Source: Marsupella aquatica
Taxonomy: Eukaryota; Plantae; Marchantiophyta
Reading direction: 5' to 3'
DNA length: 64,000 bases
Assembly (NCBI GenBank): GCA_973895155.1
Contig: OZ316898.1
Location: forward strand, 10,010,286-10,074,285
Both the position numbers and the translations under genes were made by a program. Shown here piece by piece: positions 3,901-9,794 of the stretch (its first letter is position 1; each line of letters begins with the position of its first letter). Under the pieces are notes generated by a model, which saw only the letters and a list, made by a program, of their open reading frames with translations, did no database searches and was not told the origin of the DNA.

Positions 3901-6900
3901 GAGTTGAAATCCTTACTTTTGGGCAAATATGGTTTGTAATGCCGACCGACAGAATGTTTAGGTCCCGTGCACAAAAACTAATCTCCTAATCATTTGTTGT
4001 GATCGTGTTTTCCTTGAGACCTGTTGTCACCGACGTTCGTGAACTGCTCTCAAGGAAGAAAGTTGCACTGCTGAGTTCATCATGTTTATTTTGATTAGGT
4101 CGTCCCTACTGGAGCAAAGTAAAGCCGTGCCTCGCCCATCAGGAGAGCTGCCGACACAGAGTGCCACTCCGAGTGGAAGGGGATACAAAGACCGCTGTTA
4201 TGAAGAGATTCGCAAGGCTGTTGAAGCAAGATTTGATAACCTTATTTCTAATGTGAGCGTCTACGGGAGCTATTTGTGGCAGCATGCGGCTAGAAGTTTG
4301 GCAGTGCTGGTTGTGGCTATAATTTTGTTCTAACAGTTGACTTGGTGAAAACTGTTCGGAGCTTTTCTCATGAATTACCATTCTCTTACTGTTTTGAACT
4401 GTATGAGCTATTCACGGTCCCAAGTTTGGTTGGCCTATTTATAATACTTTTATCTTCTTTGGGTGAATGCTGATTACAGTTGGTCATGGAGGAAGACTTG
4501 AAGGCGGCGTTAGAAGAAGCCAATTTGGTAAGAATTATCGTTCATCTAGACTTTGCACCTCGTATCCGAGAAAGGTAAATTTTGTTTTTGCTCTTAAGGA
4601 CTTACGGAACTGAAAGTGTTTATAGCAATGATATGTCAGTCGTAAACGATTCCAACGACCGTGGTATGGAAGAGCTGATTGCAGTCATTGAACTTGAATT
4701 TTGGGTCTTGAGAGCATGTGGTACATTTCTTTCACTGTTGTAGATCTCGTTGGAGCTGCCAGACATCTATGACCATGTTGCACCTTGTTTCCCACCTCGG
4801 TAAGTTCCTTATCTAGCCTTTTTGATCCTCTTGTACACTTTGCGTCACGGTACTTGTTTGTGTTGATTCTAGCTAGACAATGGAAAGATAACATCGCGTT
4901 TTGTGGCAGGTACGATGTCTTTCAGCTGTTGGTGCAACTGTACACAGAGCGTTTTGTTCAGATGCTTAGGAAGCTGGGGGATAGAGCAAACAACTTAACT
5001 AATATTGAGATTCTGAAGGTCTGTTGACCGCGTTGCAACCAGATGACTTTTCTGAACACATTATGTTGTACTCAACCGATTCTTGACCTTCTCTAGCGTT
5101 TGTAGTTGTTTTTCTCACTTCTTGATTAATGTTGCAGTGAGCGTTCACTCATGCTCAGGAATATCTGGCGGTTTTGGGTTTTCATGTACTTTGAACTGAT
5201 AGCCGTGAATGTGTTCTTTGATGATCTACATGTGTTCAGGTTACAGGGTGGGTAGTGCAGTATCAGGAGCAGCTGGTGCAATTGGGAGTTGATGAAGCTA
5301 TCGCTACGGTTTGTGCTGAAAGTGGAGCTATGGACCCGCTGATGAACGCTTATGTTGATCGCATGCAAGTAACAATGCAAGTAAGACTGTTGGTGGATAT
5401 TGTGAAGGACGTTCATCATGATTCCCGATTTATTTTATTGCTTGTAATAACTTAATGTTTTCAAAGTGTTTCAATGTGCGAATTTTTGGTCCTGGCTGAA
5501 GGACAAATCTCACCTGGCAAGGCTGCTTTTTTAGCTGTAAAGTTCTGATGAATTTGGGGGTCACTTATCTCCGTTTGGGACGCTGATTGGTGTCGTTCCT
5601 TTTTGACTTCGGTGGCAGAAATGGTATACAAATATATTGGATGCAGATCGGAAAAATCCTCCCAAGAAAACAGAAGATGGAAAGCTTTGGACACCAGCAG
5701 CCGTTGACCTGTTTCGAATCTTAACTGAGCAAGTGCAAGTTGTGCAAGAAAATAGCACCGATGTGATGCTCTACCGAATCGCACTTGCTGTAATTCAGGT
5801 ACCGTACTTTGTGACTGCTTGTTTAATATTCTTACTTCAAAACGCTCTGGATGCCTTCCTGAGTTGGTCATGTATATGTTTTTGGCTGAGGAGTGCTGTT
5901 GCTGGGTTCATAGTATTTGTTACTTGCCTATTATTCGTTACAAGTTGCAGAGATGGCTCTTTAATCTCATAAAGTGATGAAGGATTGAAATATTGTTACT
6001 CAGCTGAAACTGACAAAAAGCTTGACCTAAACTGCATCACAGGTCATGGGAGACTTTCAAGTGGCTCAACGGCAAAGACTGGAAGAACCAGTCGCAGAGA
6101 TTGGTCTTGAGCCCTTATGTGCAATTGTAAGGATTCATCTTCTTCACATCTCTGGGACCATGAACTAAACATTTGTATTGATCAGTGTCTTTGTACAGGA
6201 CACACCTGCGTCAATATATTAAGAATATATGTACCATATGCCTTGATAAACTTGATTTTTATATCATGTAAATTTACGGCACTAATATTCACTGATATTA
6301 GTGCTGGCCACCACGTACCAATGTGCTATACTTTCCATGAATTCATTCTGTCGGCTATCATGGCTTGTCGTTTTGTTTCGACGTCTATGTTCTTGCGGAT
6401 CCTGACGATAATGAGGGAGCAATTCAGTCTGTGACTAGTCCAAATTTTGTTTGGTGTTATTGCTGACCCATTATCCTATCGCAGTGGTTCTCTGTGTGTC
6501 TTCGTTTGTTACGTCCATTGAACTTGAACAACTATTTGCTAATGTGACTCAAACTTGCAAGTGCAGGTAAATAATAATGTAAGGTGTTACGACCTTGCGC
6601 TAGATCTGAGTAATAATGTAATGGAAGCTTTGACACCGTATTATGCTGAGCAGGTACAAGTATTTGGTTTTTTGGACAATATTAGATTTTCTCCAAAAGC
6701 GAAATATTCTTGGAGACACATAAGCAGGCTGATACTTCTGTTTATTATATGTTGTTATTTATTGTCTTTCCTCGAGGGCGTACTATATTTTGCGCAAAGA
6801 AATTCCTGTCTTACGGTGGTTTTATGTGGGTAACTCATGTCAGGTCAACTTTGAAGACACCTGCAAAGGTTTCCTTGAGATTGCCAAGGTAGGAAACTTC

Positions 6901-9794
6901 CCTATTTAAAGGTTATTGTTTGTTTTTATGATTTCTGCTCACCCATCTTCTGCTCTGGTTGTCGTTTGGTAGTTGGAGTATATCATTTGTCATGTTATTG
7001 CGAGTGCGTATTTGAAAACGCTAGTTCTTTACCGTCGTCATATCTTTATGCTGTCATCTTACTTACGGAGCTGTGTTTGATTGTAGCTTTTTGTGGCTTG
7101 CACAGTCGTGTAGGACCAGGGTTTGAGCAAGTATTCTATCTGTTGTTGACAGTAATCTAGCTCCGCAACGATCATGCGAAGATACTAGACCATTGCCGCG
7201 AGCGATCTTGTTGAATTGTGGACTCTTGTTATTGCATGATGACAGGAAGGAGTACAGCAAACTGTGAGGGTGATATTTGAAGACCCGGGAGTAAGGGAGT
7301 TGATAGCCAAGCTTTACCTTAAAGGTGAGTGGGGACAATTTGGTGGATGTTCATGAAAGCCAATCGATTGTTTGGCATTCTAAAGAGGATGAGATCGGAC
7401 CAGCACAGCTTCTGTACGGGGTAGTGTTGAGAACACCAGAGTAATAATCAAAAAGTCGCGAAACTTCAGAGGCAGTCCTCCATAATTGTTGTTGGTGCAC
7501 TGCCTACTGGCATCTTTAAGGAAACACCGAGTAATCTGTTTATAAACGTTGTATCTTTAGTTGGTTTCTTTTTCAGAATGACCGTGTGAAAATGCTGGAT
7601 TTTTTCTGGAACAGAGTGGTACGAAGGGTCAATAACGGAATCCTTGGTAGTCACATTTGAGGATTATTATTCAGACATAAGAATGTGAGTTTGGTTTCTC
7701 ATTCTGGATGTCGTCCGTCTGGAACAGATTGGTTTGAAGGGCTAGTTACCGAGTACTTGGTAGCTACTTTTGGGGATTATTTTGGAGATGTAAAGCTGTG
7801 AGTACGGTCTCCCCTCAAGCGCACGCTGCTTTCCGTCCTGCCACTTTCTTTCCATCCCATGTTGCCGCATTGTCACTTTCTTTTACCAGGCGCTACTGTG
7901 TATTCCCTTTCATTGGCGGCTTTTTGGCCCTAAAAGCACTCTGTTGTAGGGATTGTCTGTTTGCGCGTTGCTCATATACAAATATTTTTCCGAAAATGGG
8001 ATACACGTGATGTATCATGGTCCCTTCGTCTTCAAGTGCATGGTCTTCTGAACATGGTATTCAATATAGATGTTCTTGGAGAAATCGTTTGTTCACAGTA
8101 AGGCCGTTTGGTATTCTTATTTTCTTTCAAGGCCCTCATAGTTTACCCCCGACATATGTTACAGCTATATCGAGGATAGATCATTTCGACGATTTGCTGA
8201 GGCGTGTCTAGAAGAAACAGTAGTTGTTTACGTGGACCATCTTCTTACCCAGGTTGCCCAATTGACCACGCCATACTAAGGACTCAGGCTATATTCATTC
8301 TACAACTTCCTTTCGTTTTGCTGAAAGTGGCAAGTTTTGAGTATTCGTTCTGTGTCGTTGTGCTTATTCAGTTCCCAATTTCATGTTCGTCCTGTTGAGC
8401 AGAATGTTTTGGTGATGTGGATGCTTGGATGTGCGTATTGCCATTATATGCAAATGATTCTAATACCTGCTAGTGTTCTATTAGTTTCCTTAGCCGCTGT
8501 TGTTGTCGGTGATCTCATACAATTCTGCTGATTTTTTGCTTCGAAACCTTGAATGACGAGCAGAGAAACTTCATCAAGGAGGAGACTCTGGACAGGCTCA
8601 AGGTAGATGAAGAAGTTGTGAACGAATTTTTCAAGGAAATCATGAATCCTGCGGTAAGCTTGTCGATTAGATGGACCTACTTTGATAATATTTCTGTTCT
8701 GTCGGTGTAGTACAACTTGGACCCCGCACACAGAGCCTCCACATTTTTTGCTGCAGTCTGTATTAGTTGTCAGCGACTGCATATGTAATACTGAGGATTT
8801 GTCCAAAGGCAATCCTGAGTTTCCAGTGTGGAGTAGTAGACCGAGTACAAGGCTCTGATCTTATTGACAGCAGCAATCCAGTGTGATAGACACCGCTGTA
8901 ACGCAAGTTGCTGATAGTGATTTATTACTTTGCTATATATTCTGTGGCGGTGATCAGAAAGTGGAAAAAAGACTTCAGCCTTTGGCAGAGTTACGGGAGC
9001 TTGCGTCGTCGGAGAGTGTCGATGCCTTCACTTTGGCATATACAAATCTACTGCAAAATCACCCTGATTGTCCTGTACGTAGACCTCTTTCATTCGGGCA
9101 TTTGAAATACATATGCTATTTTACTAGAAAGACTAATCCAAAGCAATGCATTACTAGCAAGGAAGCGTCTTTGTGCAATGTCTGAGCAGTAGAACATTCC
9201 AAAATGGAGGAAAGGAAGAAAGTGAGCTATTCTTAGAGTCGTGTGACAGGTTTTGTTGAAAGTATCGAATTAAGCATGGGAACAAATTTCGCTAATACTG
9301 CTACTGTTTTGGTGTCTCATCAGCCGGAAGTTGTTGAGAAACTAGTGGCATTACGGGAAGGTATCCCAAGAAAAGATGCCCGGGAGGTATGGAACATACG
9401 ATCCTTGGAAGGGACATTTACCCGTGTCAGTTGCATATTTTTACTGGAAAGTGTCTGCGGACGTCGTTATCATTGATTGGGAGGACTAATTGCAAGATTG
9501 ATTTGATTGATTTATGCCACCGGCCTTCTTTACAGTTGTTGACTGAACGGCGTTTATTGTAGAACTGAAGATTGGATGCAGGGCATGTTAATCAAGAAAG
9601 AATCATATGCAATAATTAAATATACGTTCAGCGGAGTTTTTTGTGCACTCTGAACAAGTGGAATTTGCTTGCAGGTGGTACTGGAATGCAAAGAGGTTTA
9701 CAGAAACAGTTTTGCAAATGGAGAGCTTCCAAAGCCAGGATTGGTTTTTAGCAGACTTACATGCCTTCCAAAAACTGTACTCCGAAAAAAGTAA
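987..9794 (+). CDS. SEC6: Exocyst complex component SEC6 (EXOC3), 25 coding exons per isoform
   Basis: Manual GT-AG splicing gives [25 protein letters not shown]...ANDAQLST...[26 protein letters not shown]...[20 protein letters not shown]...[22 protein letters not shown]...[12 protein letters not shown]...[12 protein letters not shown]...LRKK*, matching plant SEC6 as I recall it. Approximate exons: 987-1115, 1311-1349, 1534-1622, 1812-1902, 2308-2397, 2590-2669, 3106-3198, 3428-3454, 3696-3803, 4099-4252, 4480-4527, 4744-4799, 4910-5018, 5240-5380, 5619-5798, 6043-6126, 6567-6653, 6844-6888, 7246-7324, (7615-7684 or 7728-7797), 8165-8252, 8564-8653, 8958-9074, 9324-9387, 9675-9794. Confidence 0.96.
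3808..3906. repeat. Tandem duplication of about 49 bp in a SEC6 intron
   Basis: gtatctcttgaatcaacatg.g.atatcctaat.cttatctcaagagtt occurs twice. Confidence 0.85.
7615..7684 (+). CDS. SEC6: SEC6 alternative exon 20a (candidate mutually exclusive exon)
   Basis: 70 nt with acceptor tctggaacag and donor gtgagt. Encodes [24 protein letters not shown], in phase with exons 19 and 21. Confidence 0.8.
7728..7797 (+). CDS. SEC6: SEC6 alternative exon 20b (candidate mutually exclusive exon, closer to plant consensus)
   Basis: 70 nt with acceptor tctggaacag and donor gtgagt. Encodes [24 protein letters not shown]. Confidence 0.9.

Follow-up and report, generated by a model that had tools for sequence, protein, structure and literature searches.

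The 64,000-nucleotide stretch of Marsupella aquatica DNA analysed here (the window) carries a gene for the exocyst subunit SEC6/EXOC3. The exon at positions 5619-5795 scored 41 bits against the Pfam Sec6 profile PF06046 (cut-off 29.7), further exons matched the profile in order, and the closest full protein, SEC6 of Calypogeia fissa (C. fissa), a relative of this leafy liverwort, matched the yeast Sec6 chains 5YFP_C and 2FJI. The exocyst is a complex that tethers secretory vesicles and SEC6 is one of its core subunits; in the annotated genomes checked, SEC6 was mostly a single gene.

Between two constitutive exons of this gene lie two consecutive 70-nt exons, here called exon A (upstream) and exon B (downstream), with a short spacer intron between them (Table 1). 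A first, sequence-only reading had described them as a tandem pair sharing acceptor, donor and phase, and inspection of the locus bore this out: tctggaacag precedes each exon and gtgagt follows each, and the coordinates give the 43-nt gap that had been proposed. Exons A and B are of equal length and phase and are identical at 48/70 nt and 12/24 residues, the latter as counted before, and the four synonymous differences reported between them are present at codons 8, 9, 14 and 21. The last base of the upstream constitutive exon, whose donor is gtgagt, contributes one base of a shared codon, while the first base of the downstream constitutive exon finishes the codon opened by exon A or exon B alike.

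Table 1. The SEC6 exon pair and its surroundings (window coordinates)
Feature	Position	Strand	Evidence
Constitutive SEC6 exon 5' of the pair	7244..7324	+	Joints 6886->7244 and 7324->7728 in spliced contigs of a related species
Intron preceding exon A, 290 nt	7325..7614	+	Segment identity and alignment with C. fissa
Exon A, upstream copy, 70 nt	7615..7684	+	AG acceptor, GTGAGT donor
Spacer intron, 43 nt	7685..7727	+	In-frame stop with exon A at 7686-7688
CTCAT, branch-point-like motif	7698..7702	+	CTYAT in 6/6 loci (alignment)
Exon B, canonical copy, 70 nt	7728..7797	+	Annotated SEC6 proteins and RNA contigs
Intron following exon B, 367 nt	7798..8164	+	Segment identity with C. fissa
Constitutive exon 3' of the pair	8165..8251	+	Joint 7797->8165 in spliced contigs of a related species

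Since 70 is not a multiple of 3, inclusion of both exons or of neither breaks the reading frame, as the sequence-only reading had stated, and the resulting stop codons could be located. When exon B was read straight after exon A a stop was encountered at the third codon, when the spacer was kept a stop lay immediately past exon A, and when both exons were skipped a stop appeared in the following exon. Transcripts carrying both exons or neither would therefore terminate early and are expected to be degraded. Exon A alone is open in the frame of the gene, and with exon B skipped its inclusion restores that frame. A role for exon A as a poison (NMD-triggering) cassette exon was considered and rejected, because the exon is open in frame and evolves as coding sequence.

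The peptide encoded by exon A is an alternative to SEC6 residues 576-599 (numbered as in C. fissa). The exon B peptide is identical to C. fissa SEC6 at 24/24 residues and to the proteins of Sphagnum, Riccia, Marchantia and Selaginella at 22-23/24. The exons were searched singly, and folding used the unaltered C. fissa SEC6 protein. In our reading each exon encodes a short turn followed or preceded by no more than a single complete alpha-helix of the C-terminal helical region, and two SEC6 proteins differing in this element are possible. On the Pfam Sec6 profile exon A scored higher than exon B (20.6 versus 11.8 bits). The suggestion that the differences between A and B fall on one face of the helix was dropped, as the helical moment at 100 degrees was not significant (p ~0.33).

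The SEC6 loci of relatives were searched for both exons, as had been suggested, and the pair was recovered in five further liverwort loci (two C. fissa copies, Marchantia polymorpha, Riccia fluitans and R. sorocarpa), with exon A showing no decay. Because the same pair occupies the same place in all of these loci, the similarity of A and B is not a matter of chance. Together with the window, the six loci span two liverwort classes, C. fissa belonging to the Jungermanniopsida. Both exons are 70 nt long and free of stops in 6/6 loci, both have an AG acceptor in 6/6, and the exon A donor is GTGAGT throughout (6/6); at exon B the window and C. fissa have this same donor, and Marchantia and Riccia have GTAAGT. 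Spacer length is 43 nt in the window and in the two C. fissa copies; it is 47 nt in R. sorocarpa and 48 nt in both Marchantia and R. fluitans. In a tree the exon A copies clustered together (support 85/91), giving moderate support for a single origin from 70 columns. A second copy of the exon was not found in SEC6 of Sphagnum, Ceratodon or Selaginella, and within this comparison the exon pair is liverwort-specific.

Comparison of the window with C. fissa placed the pair within an unusually constant region. Exon A is identical at 70/70 positions to both C. fissa loci, whereas the overall identity is 93.7% for constitutive exons and 68% for introns. The most conserved part of the stretch compared is the block 7564..7843 (+ strand), which was 90-100% identical in 40-nt steps and takes in both exons, the spacer between them and some 45-50 nt of each flanking intron. 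Identity to C. fissa is 90-95% over the final ~50 nt of the upstream intron, which begin at about 7564; in the downstream intron it is ~93% over the first ~45 nt and again in an island at about 7884-7923.

Substitutions between orthologues were then used to ask how exon A evolves. Its dN/dS ranged from 0.05 to 0.20: between Marchantia and R. fluitans the value was 0.05 (6 changes synonymous, 2 non-synonymous; Fisher p = 4e-4), and between the window and Marchantia it was 0.20 (p = 0.016); within Riccia it was 0.62, a figure drawn from 7 changes. Variable sites were distributed 8/4/14 over the three codon positions. Additionally, W2, G5, T8, L11, T14, D17, Y18 and D21 were kept in every exon A copy (8/8 checked). 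In a set of 55 SEC6 proteins, taken from plants and from more distant relatives, these eight residues vary little or not at all. Judged by this pattern, exon A evolves as coding sequence under purifying selection, and the comparative record indicates that the pair is neither a recent nor a dead duplicate. The earlier proposal of selection on both copies is thus upheld by conservation across two classes, by purifying selection and by a spacer held at 43-48 nt.

RNA-like data were available as one set of assembled contigs from a related species (tissue unspecified, rare variants dropped). These contained the spliced joints 7324->7728 and 7797->8165, which correspond to the exon B form, agree with the flanking exon ends (7324 and 8165) predicted beforehand and show that exon A can be cleanly skipped. 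No exon A junction was present among the joints listed for this contig set, and one RNA-like contig was unspliced across 7589-7820. The sequence-only reading is strongly supported in its structural and evolutionary part. At the RNA level only the exon B form was seen, and its further claims, that the gene makes two isoforms, that these differ between tissues or generations and that partner binding changes, are hypotheses.

Protein records gave a similar picture. Exon A was absent from annotated SEC6, with 6/6 liverwort proteins checked using exon B, and every match listed by homology searches, a representative search and cluster look-ups was an exon B protein, the seed-plant SEC6 proteins listed being of the exon B type only. 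The missing annotated exon A isoform is weak evidence, since isoforms so alike would merge into one cluster. Metagenome contigs scanned with exact and degenerate exon A patterns gave no matches. An intronless SEC6 copy was considered as a fossil exon A transcript and rejected, because its segment is B-like and derives from a moss-like lineage without exon A.

These observations bear on whether exon A serves as protein-coding sequence at all. It may instead be a non-coding splicing element, that is, a decoy or regulatory pseudo-exon that tunes exon B or cuts SEC6 output and never yields functional protein. Such a role would suit the exon B-only junctions, the early stops produced by double inclusion or spacer retention, and the finding that exon A and its flanks exceed constitutive exons in nucleotide conservation between the window and C. 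fissa, synonymous sites included. However, the changes in exon A between Marchantia and Riccia and between classes are mostly synonymous or at third positions (the dN/dS range and codon-position counts given above), exon A retains every residue that is invariant across the SEC6 family, and an exact length of 70 nt with an open frame in six loci would be superfluous for a purely RNA-level role. We therefore consider a non-coding function unlikely.

Exon A could also be read into a retained spacer, giving a truncated SEC6 that ends just past the exon, or an alternative transcript end. A stop does lie directly past the exon A donor in 6/6 loci, and the unspliced contig extends over both exons. 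However, the stop recurs because GTGAGT reads xxG TGA in this phase; it is a by-product of the donor consensus and need not have been selected for itself, the unspliced contig could represent pre-mRNA or DNA, and the consensus exon A donor, kept in 6/6 loci, is needed only for onward splicing. We regard truncation as very improbable. Finally, that exon A is a dead, unused duplicate left intact by chance can be virtually dismissed, for although the exon is missing from all annotated models and from the RNA junctions seen, at the intron rate of change its complete identity with C. fissa would be expected with a probability of only ~3e-12, six loci from two classes all keep its frame, its length and its splice sites intact, and its dN/dS is well below 1.

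Taken together, the data make it very likely that exons A and B are a conserved mutually exclusive pair with a putative exon A isoform. The fuller account, which we think probable, is that they are tandem-duplicated, mutually exclusive coding exons of SEC6 that arose before the split of two large liverwort classes, that both have been kept by selection and that exon B is the default. The gene would then make two SEC6 proteins that differ in one helix of the C-terminal domain. Exon B would supply the usual form, matching that in all other land plants checked, and exon A would be a minor alternative, presumably used under particular conditions or in particular cell types.

The architecture suggests how the choice could be enforced. 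In animal pairs of this kind the two exons are mutually exclusive when the distance from the upstream donor (5' splice site) to the downstream branch point is less than about 50 nt, a steric limit and threshold taken from PMC7969005. As the whole spacer is 43-48 nt long, any branch point inside it would fall below this limit. The CTCAT motif (CTYAT) is a candidate branch point for exon B. Position 7701, the A of the motif, is 17 nt past the first base of the exon A donor and 26 nt ahead of the last base of the exon B acceptor, and this short donor-to-CTYAT distance (~17 nt) fits steric exclusion. With such a spacer and a likely branch point so close to the donor, U1 on the exon A donor and U2 on the exon B branch point would be mutually incompatible and the spacer could not be spliced as an intron; this is the mechanism that we infer.

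Exclusion by competing RNA structures was also considered. A consensus fold of the six loci gave no covariation support (covariation term -0.44), and a single-sequence fold did not outperform shuffled sequences (z = -0.37). Near the pair there are inverted repeats, 9-14 nt in length, with partners in intron parts that are poorly conserved in comparison with C. fissa. Exclusion of the docking/selector type was rejected, since no conserved long-range pairing was found.

A more far-reaching reading, on which we are evenly divided, is that one SEC6 gene has given liverworts two exocyst versions over several hundred million years through the swapping of one helix in its C-terminal domain, with an exon A form that is confined to certain cells, stages or conditions and has different partners. 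The isoforms would then differ in function. If this were true, the pair would be the first example, in a core trafficking complex of plants, of homologous mutually exclusive exons that are deeply conserved, and splicing would do here what EXO70 and other exocyst subunits do by gene duplication. Disruption of the exocyst causes severe developmental defects in plants (10.64898/2026.01.28.702365). Since the pair is present in Marchantia polymorpha, an easily transformed model, the use of exon A and the properties of an exocyst with the alternative helix are directly testable. The pair also shows that a conserved coding exon is overlooked in the present annotation of liverwort genomes. The sequence-only reading knew of no description of such a pair in SEC6, and none was found in the literature searched.

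In animals the mutually exclusive splicing of duplicated exons is a familiar phenomenon; alpha-tropomyosin exons 2/3 are a pair controlled by steric hindrance. To our knowledge almost no exon pairs of this kind have been characterised in land plants. The SEC6 pair offers a case in which steric control of splice choice can be tested in a plant. Exons 4a/4b of OGDH are an animal pair that is mutually exclusive through steric hindrance (PMC7969005). Like pairs of the OGDH type, the SEC6 exons are neighbours of which probably only one is used at a time, with a likely downstream branch point within ~50 nt of the upstream donor, an intervening intron kept short over long evolution and a frame incompatibility that removes mis-spliced forms. 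Unlike them, the SEC6 pair is found in a land plant, its spacer is only 43-48 nt, its branch point is predicted and the use of exon A is putative.

Exon choice in Dscam-type clusters depends on competing RNA pairings between docking and selector sites (PMC6071210). The SEC6 pair resembles these clusters in its origin by tandem duplication and in its probable one-at-a-time use, and differs in that conserved long-range pairing was not found. Alternative splicing arising from tandem exon duplication has been surveyed in animals (Kondrashov and Koonin 2001; Letunic et al. 2002; as cited in PMC3342872). As in the cases described there, exons A and B are homologous, equal in length and phase, derived by local duplication and alternative versions of one structural element; in contrast to the animal exons surveyed, they are liverwort-specific and lie in a core trafficking subunit.

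In plants, mutually exclusive splicing of duplicated exons has rarely been documented beyond predictions and read-count calls (PMC3923563). The Kassiopeia database lists predicted mutually exclusive exons of Arabidopsis, which its authors call preliminary candidates (PMC3923563). The SEC6 exons resemble these candidates in that they are neighbours, agree in length, frame and splice sites, and are alike in sequence. In contrast to such single-species predictions, the SEC6 pair has comparative support from two liverwort classes together with selection of the coding type.

The gene carrying the exon pair was identified as SEC6, which encodes a subunit of the exocyst. The Pfam Sec6 profile matched the exon at 5619-5795 with 41 bits (cut-off 29.7) and further exons of the same gene in order, and the closest full-length database protein matched yeast Sec6, for which structures have been solved (5YFP, 2FJI). 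Among annotated proteins, the SEC6 of the leafy liverwort Calypogeia fissa (class Jungermanniopsida) was the nearest, and the window aligned to its locus in introns as well as exons, which places the window in a related leafy liverwort. A SEC6 exon matching 5619-5795 was also found on a short contig of run SRR18067351 (L001:1-942), which ends short of the exon pair; across exon and introns together, the contig shares 79% identity with the window and therefore comes from yet another related liverwort.

SEC6 and its exon pair in the window
Feature	Position	Strand	Basis or length
SEC6 gene (exocyst subunit)	~990 to ~9900	+	Pfam Sec6 profile; closest full-length protein against yeast Sec6 structures
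Exon A (upstream copy)	7615-7684	+	70 nt
Exon B (canonical copy)	7728-7797	+	70 nt

The sequence-only reading had described two consecutive exons of equal length with shared borders, and this was borne out: ten identical bases precede each exon, gtgagt follows each, and a spacer of 43 nt separates them. Direct comparison gave identity at 48 of 70 nucleotides and, as first claimed, at 12 of 24 residues, with different codons at four of the identical residues. Translation agreed with the proposal that the reading frame breaks when both exons or neither are included, as early stops were found for both forms: exon B read after exon A reaches a stop at its third codon, and skipping of both exons leads to a stop within the next exon.

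SEC6 loci of other plants were fetched via annotated proteins and searched for both exons. A second 70-nt exon was present at the same position upstream of exon B in all five other liverwort loci (two C. fissa copies, Marchantia polymorpha, Riccia fluitans and Riccia sorocarpa), in each case stop-free with an AG acceptor and a GTGAGT donor. Spacer length ranges from 43 nt (C. fissa) through 47 nt (R. sorocarpa) to 48 nt (Marchantia and R. fluitans). Only exon B was found in Sphagnum, Ceratodon and Selaginella, where the preceding intron (about 180 nt, 262 nt and 47 nt, respectively) shows no remnant of another copy. In a tree of exon sequences the exon A copies fell on one side of a branch (support 85/91), and they have in common nucleotide states present in no exon B copy. 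Together with the common layout and a spacer that is alignable in part across loci, these sequence comparisons point to a single duplication predating the split between Marchantiopsida and Jungermanniopsida, a divergence that dates back roughly 350-450 million years.

Several further SEC6 arrangements were observed among the fetched sequences. The two C. fissa loci lie on different contigs (L003:3001-12582 and L004:3001-12582) and are ~96% identical over the gene, with identical exons A and B and a one-base difference in the spacer; they may be genome-doubling copies or diverged haplotypes. A 192-kb contig from an ENA metagenome assembly carries an intronless SEC6 copy (L002:10001-12411) split into open frames of 507 and 279 residues; the copy is closest to moss SEC6, has a B-type segment at the exon pair and looks like a processed retrocopy. 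In Ceratodon purpureus an inverted partial copy lies 3′ of SEC6 (L011:14294-15092, minus strand) and includes an identical copy of the exon preceding exon B, and the annotated protein (598 residues) ends before the exon B region. In Selaginella moellendorffii the gene for SEC15, another exocyst subunit, is positioned head to head with SEC6 (L012:1-805, minus strand).

Five sequencing runs matched the locus, four DNA-like and one RNA-like (X1, from a related species and labelled RNA only as a guess). One of the DNA-like runs contained all sampled words and covered the stretch compared as a single piece free of errors; it may be the run from which the window derives. The X1 contigs skip fourteen introns in the stretch compared, every one with GT..AG borders, and therefore derive from spliced RNA. 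Junctions using either exon had been anticipated; those of exon B were seen, 7324 to 7728 (exon A skipped) in a contig of depth 102 and 7797 to 8165 in another, and no junction into or out of exon A occurred among the joints listed for these contigs, which drop rare variants. Exon B is therefore a used form and probably the main one, with use of exon A putative. One X1 contig is unspliced across 7589-7820, with diverged intron sequence at both sides. The X1 species thus also carries the exon A-spacer-exon B block, with at least 90% identity, and this contig is evidence of the block's presence, not of exon A use.

Four lines of sequence comparison indicate that selection acts on exon A as a coding exon. 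Identity of the window with C. fissa is 68% in introns and 93.7% in constitutive exons, and it peaks in the block 7564-7843, the most conserved of the stretch compared, where exon A matches at 70/70 positions, exon B at 69/70 and the spacer at 40/43. The probability of 70/70 for exon A is ~3e-12 at the intron rate and ~0.01 at the constitutive exon rate. The suggestion of selection on both copies held in that both are stop-free and synonymous changes in exon A prevail in most orthologue comparisons: dN/dS was 0.05 for Marchantia against R. fluitans (6 synonymous and 2 non-synonymous changes; Fisher p = 4e-4), 0.20 for the window against Marchantia (p = 0.016), 0.14 for the window against R. 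fluitans, and 0.62, on seven changes, for the two Riccia species, where the changes are concentrated in the final three codons and at two further positions. Variable sites in exon A number 8, 4 and 14 at codon positions 1, 2 and 3. Eight SEC6 positions invariant or nearly so among 55 aligned proteins (plants and more distant relatives) are kept in every exon A copy. The Pfam Sec6 profile scored exon A above exon B (20.6 and 11.8 bits), and at several positions exon A is closer than exon B to the yeast segment, a likeness that may be due to chance. Change in exon B is much slower: 22-23 of its 24 residues agree with the peptides of Sphagnum, Riccia, Marchantia and Selaginella. The two exons differ in every liverwort examined at seven positions (6, 10, 16, 19, 20, 22 and 23), at several of which exon A is more polar.

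Were exon A a non-coding decoy or regulatory pseudo-exon, both its nucleotide-level conservation and the absence of its transcripts would be explained, but the codon-position pattern, the retention of family residues and the constant length across both classes would not. Retention of the spacer, which brings a stop immediately 3′ of exon A, could possibly yield a truncated SEC6 product, although nothing observed requires it. Conservation rules out a dead duplicate.

If the pair is mutually exclusive, its conserved anatomy suggests the most likely means of enforcement. No other SEC6 intron with borders defined by RNA contigs is as short as the spacer (the shortest of them has 110 nt), and plant introns require roughly 60-70 nt, more than the spacer offers. 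A CTYAT motif occurs in all six loci ~17 nt 3′ of the exon A donor and ~26 nt 5′ of the exon B acceptor, a normal position for the exon B branch point, which it probably represents. In animal exon pairs, binding of U1 and U2 on the same intron has a reported limit of ~50 nt (PMC7969005); the predicted liverwort branch point lies far below this limit, so that binding at the exon A donor would compete directly with binding at the exon B branch point, giving an either-or choice, and mis-spliced forms would carry early stops. Folding and inverted-repeat analyses of the pair region gave no support for competing RNA pairings. A possible splicing control element lies in the intron 3′ of exon B: an island at 7884-7923 that is ~93% identical to C. 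fissa (surrounding intron 55-75%). Short complementary matches to the intron preceding exon A occur at 7353-7364 and 7449-7462.

The encoded segment was placed on a structure model of the unaltered C. fissa SEC6 protein, representing the exon B form only and built with the 55-sequence alignment (mean pLDDT 81; ~95 around the segment). In the model, exon B encodes residues 576-599 (yeast Sec6 ~619-642), comprising a short turn followed by the entire helix 581-600 of the C-terminal helical domain, and a swap of the exons is therefore predicted to exchange one complete helix. The differences between the exons showed no significant tendency to lie on a single face of the helix. The annotated C. 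fissa proteins (P0259/P0372) exceed other plant SEC6 proteins by ~60 residues, the extra part lying at ~752-813 and mostly modelled with pLDDT <50 (752-777, 796-813), which probably reflects faulty gene modelling at the 3′ end.

Taken together, the anatomy is confirmed and the pair in five more liverwort loci supports the mutually exclusive reading in structure and evolution, with two-isoform expression and function putative. Literature searches on SEC6/MpSEC6, mutually exclusive exons in Marchantia and the Marchantia exocyst found no description of the pair, in agreement with the earlier statement that none was known for SEC6; a Riccia fluitans survey reports 169 mutually exclusive events, and SEC6 and the exocyst are absent from its text. 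The class of mechanism is known from animals and, as far as the literature was searched, this instance is new for both plants and the exocyst.
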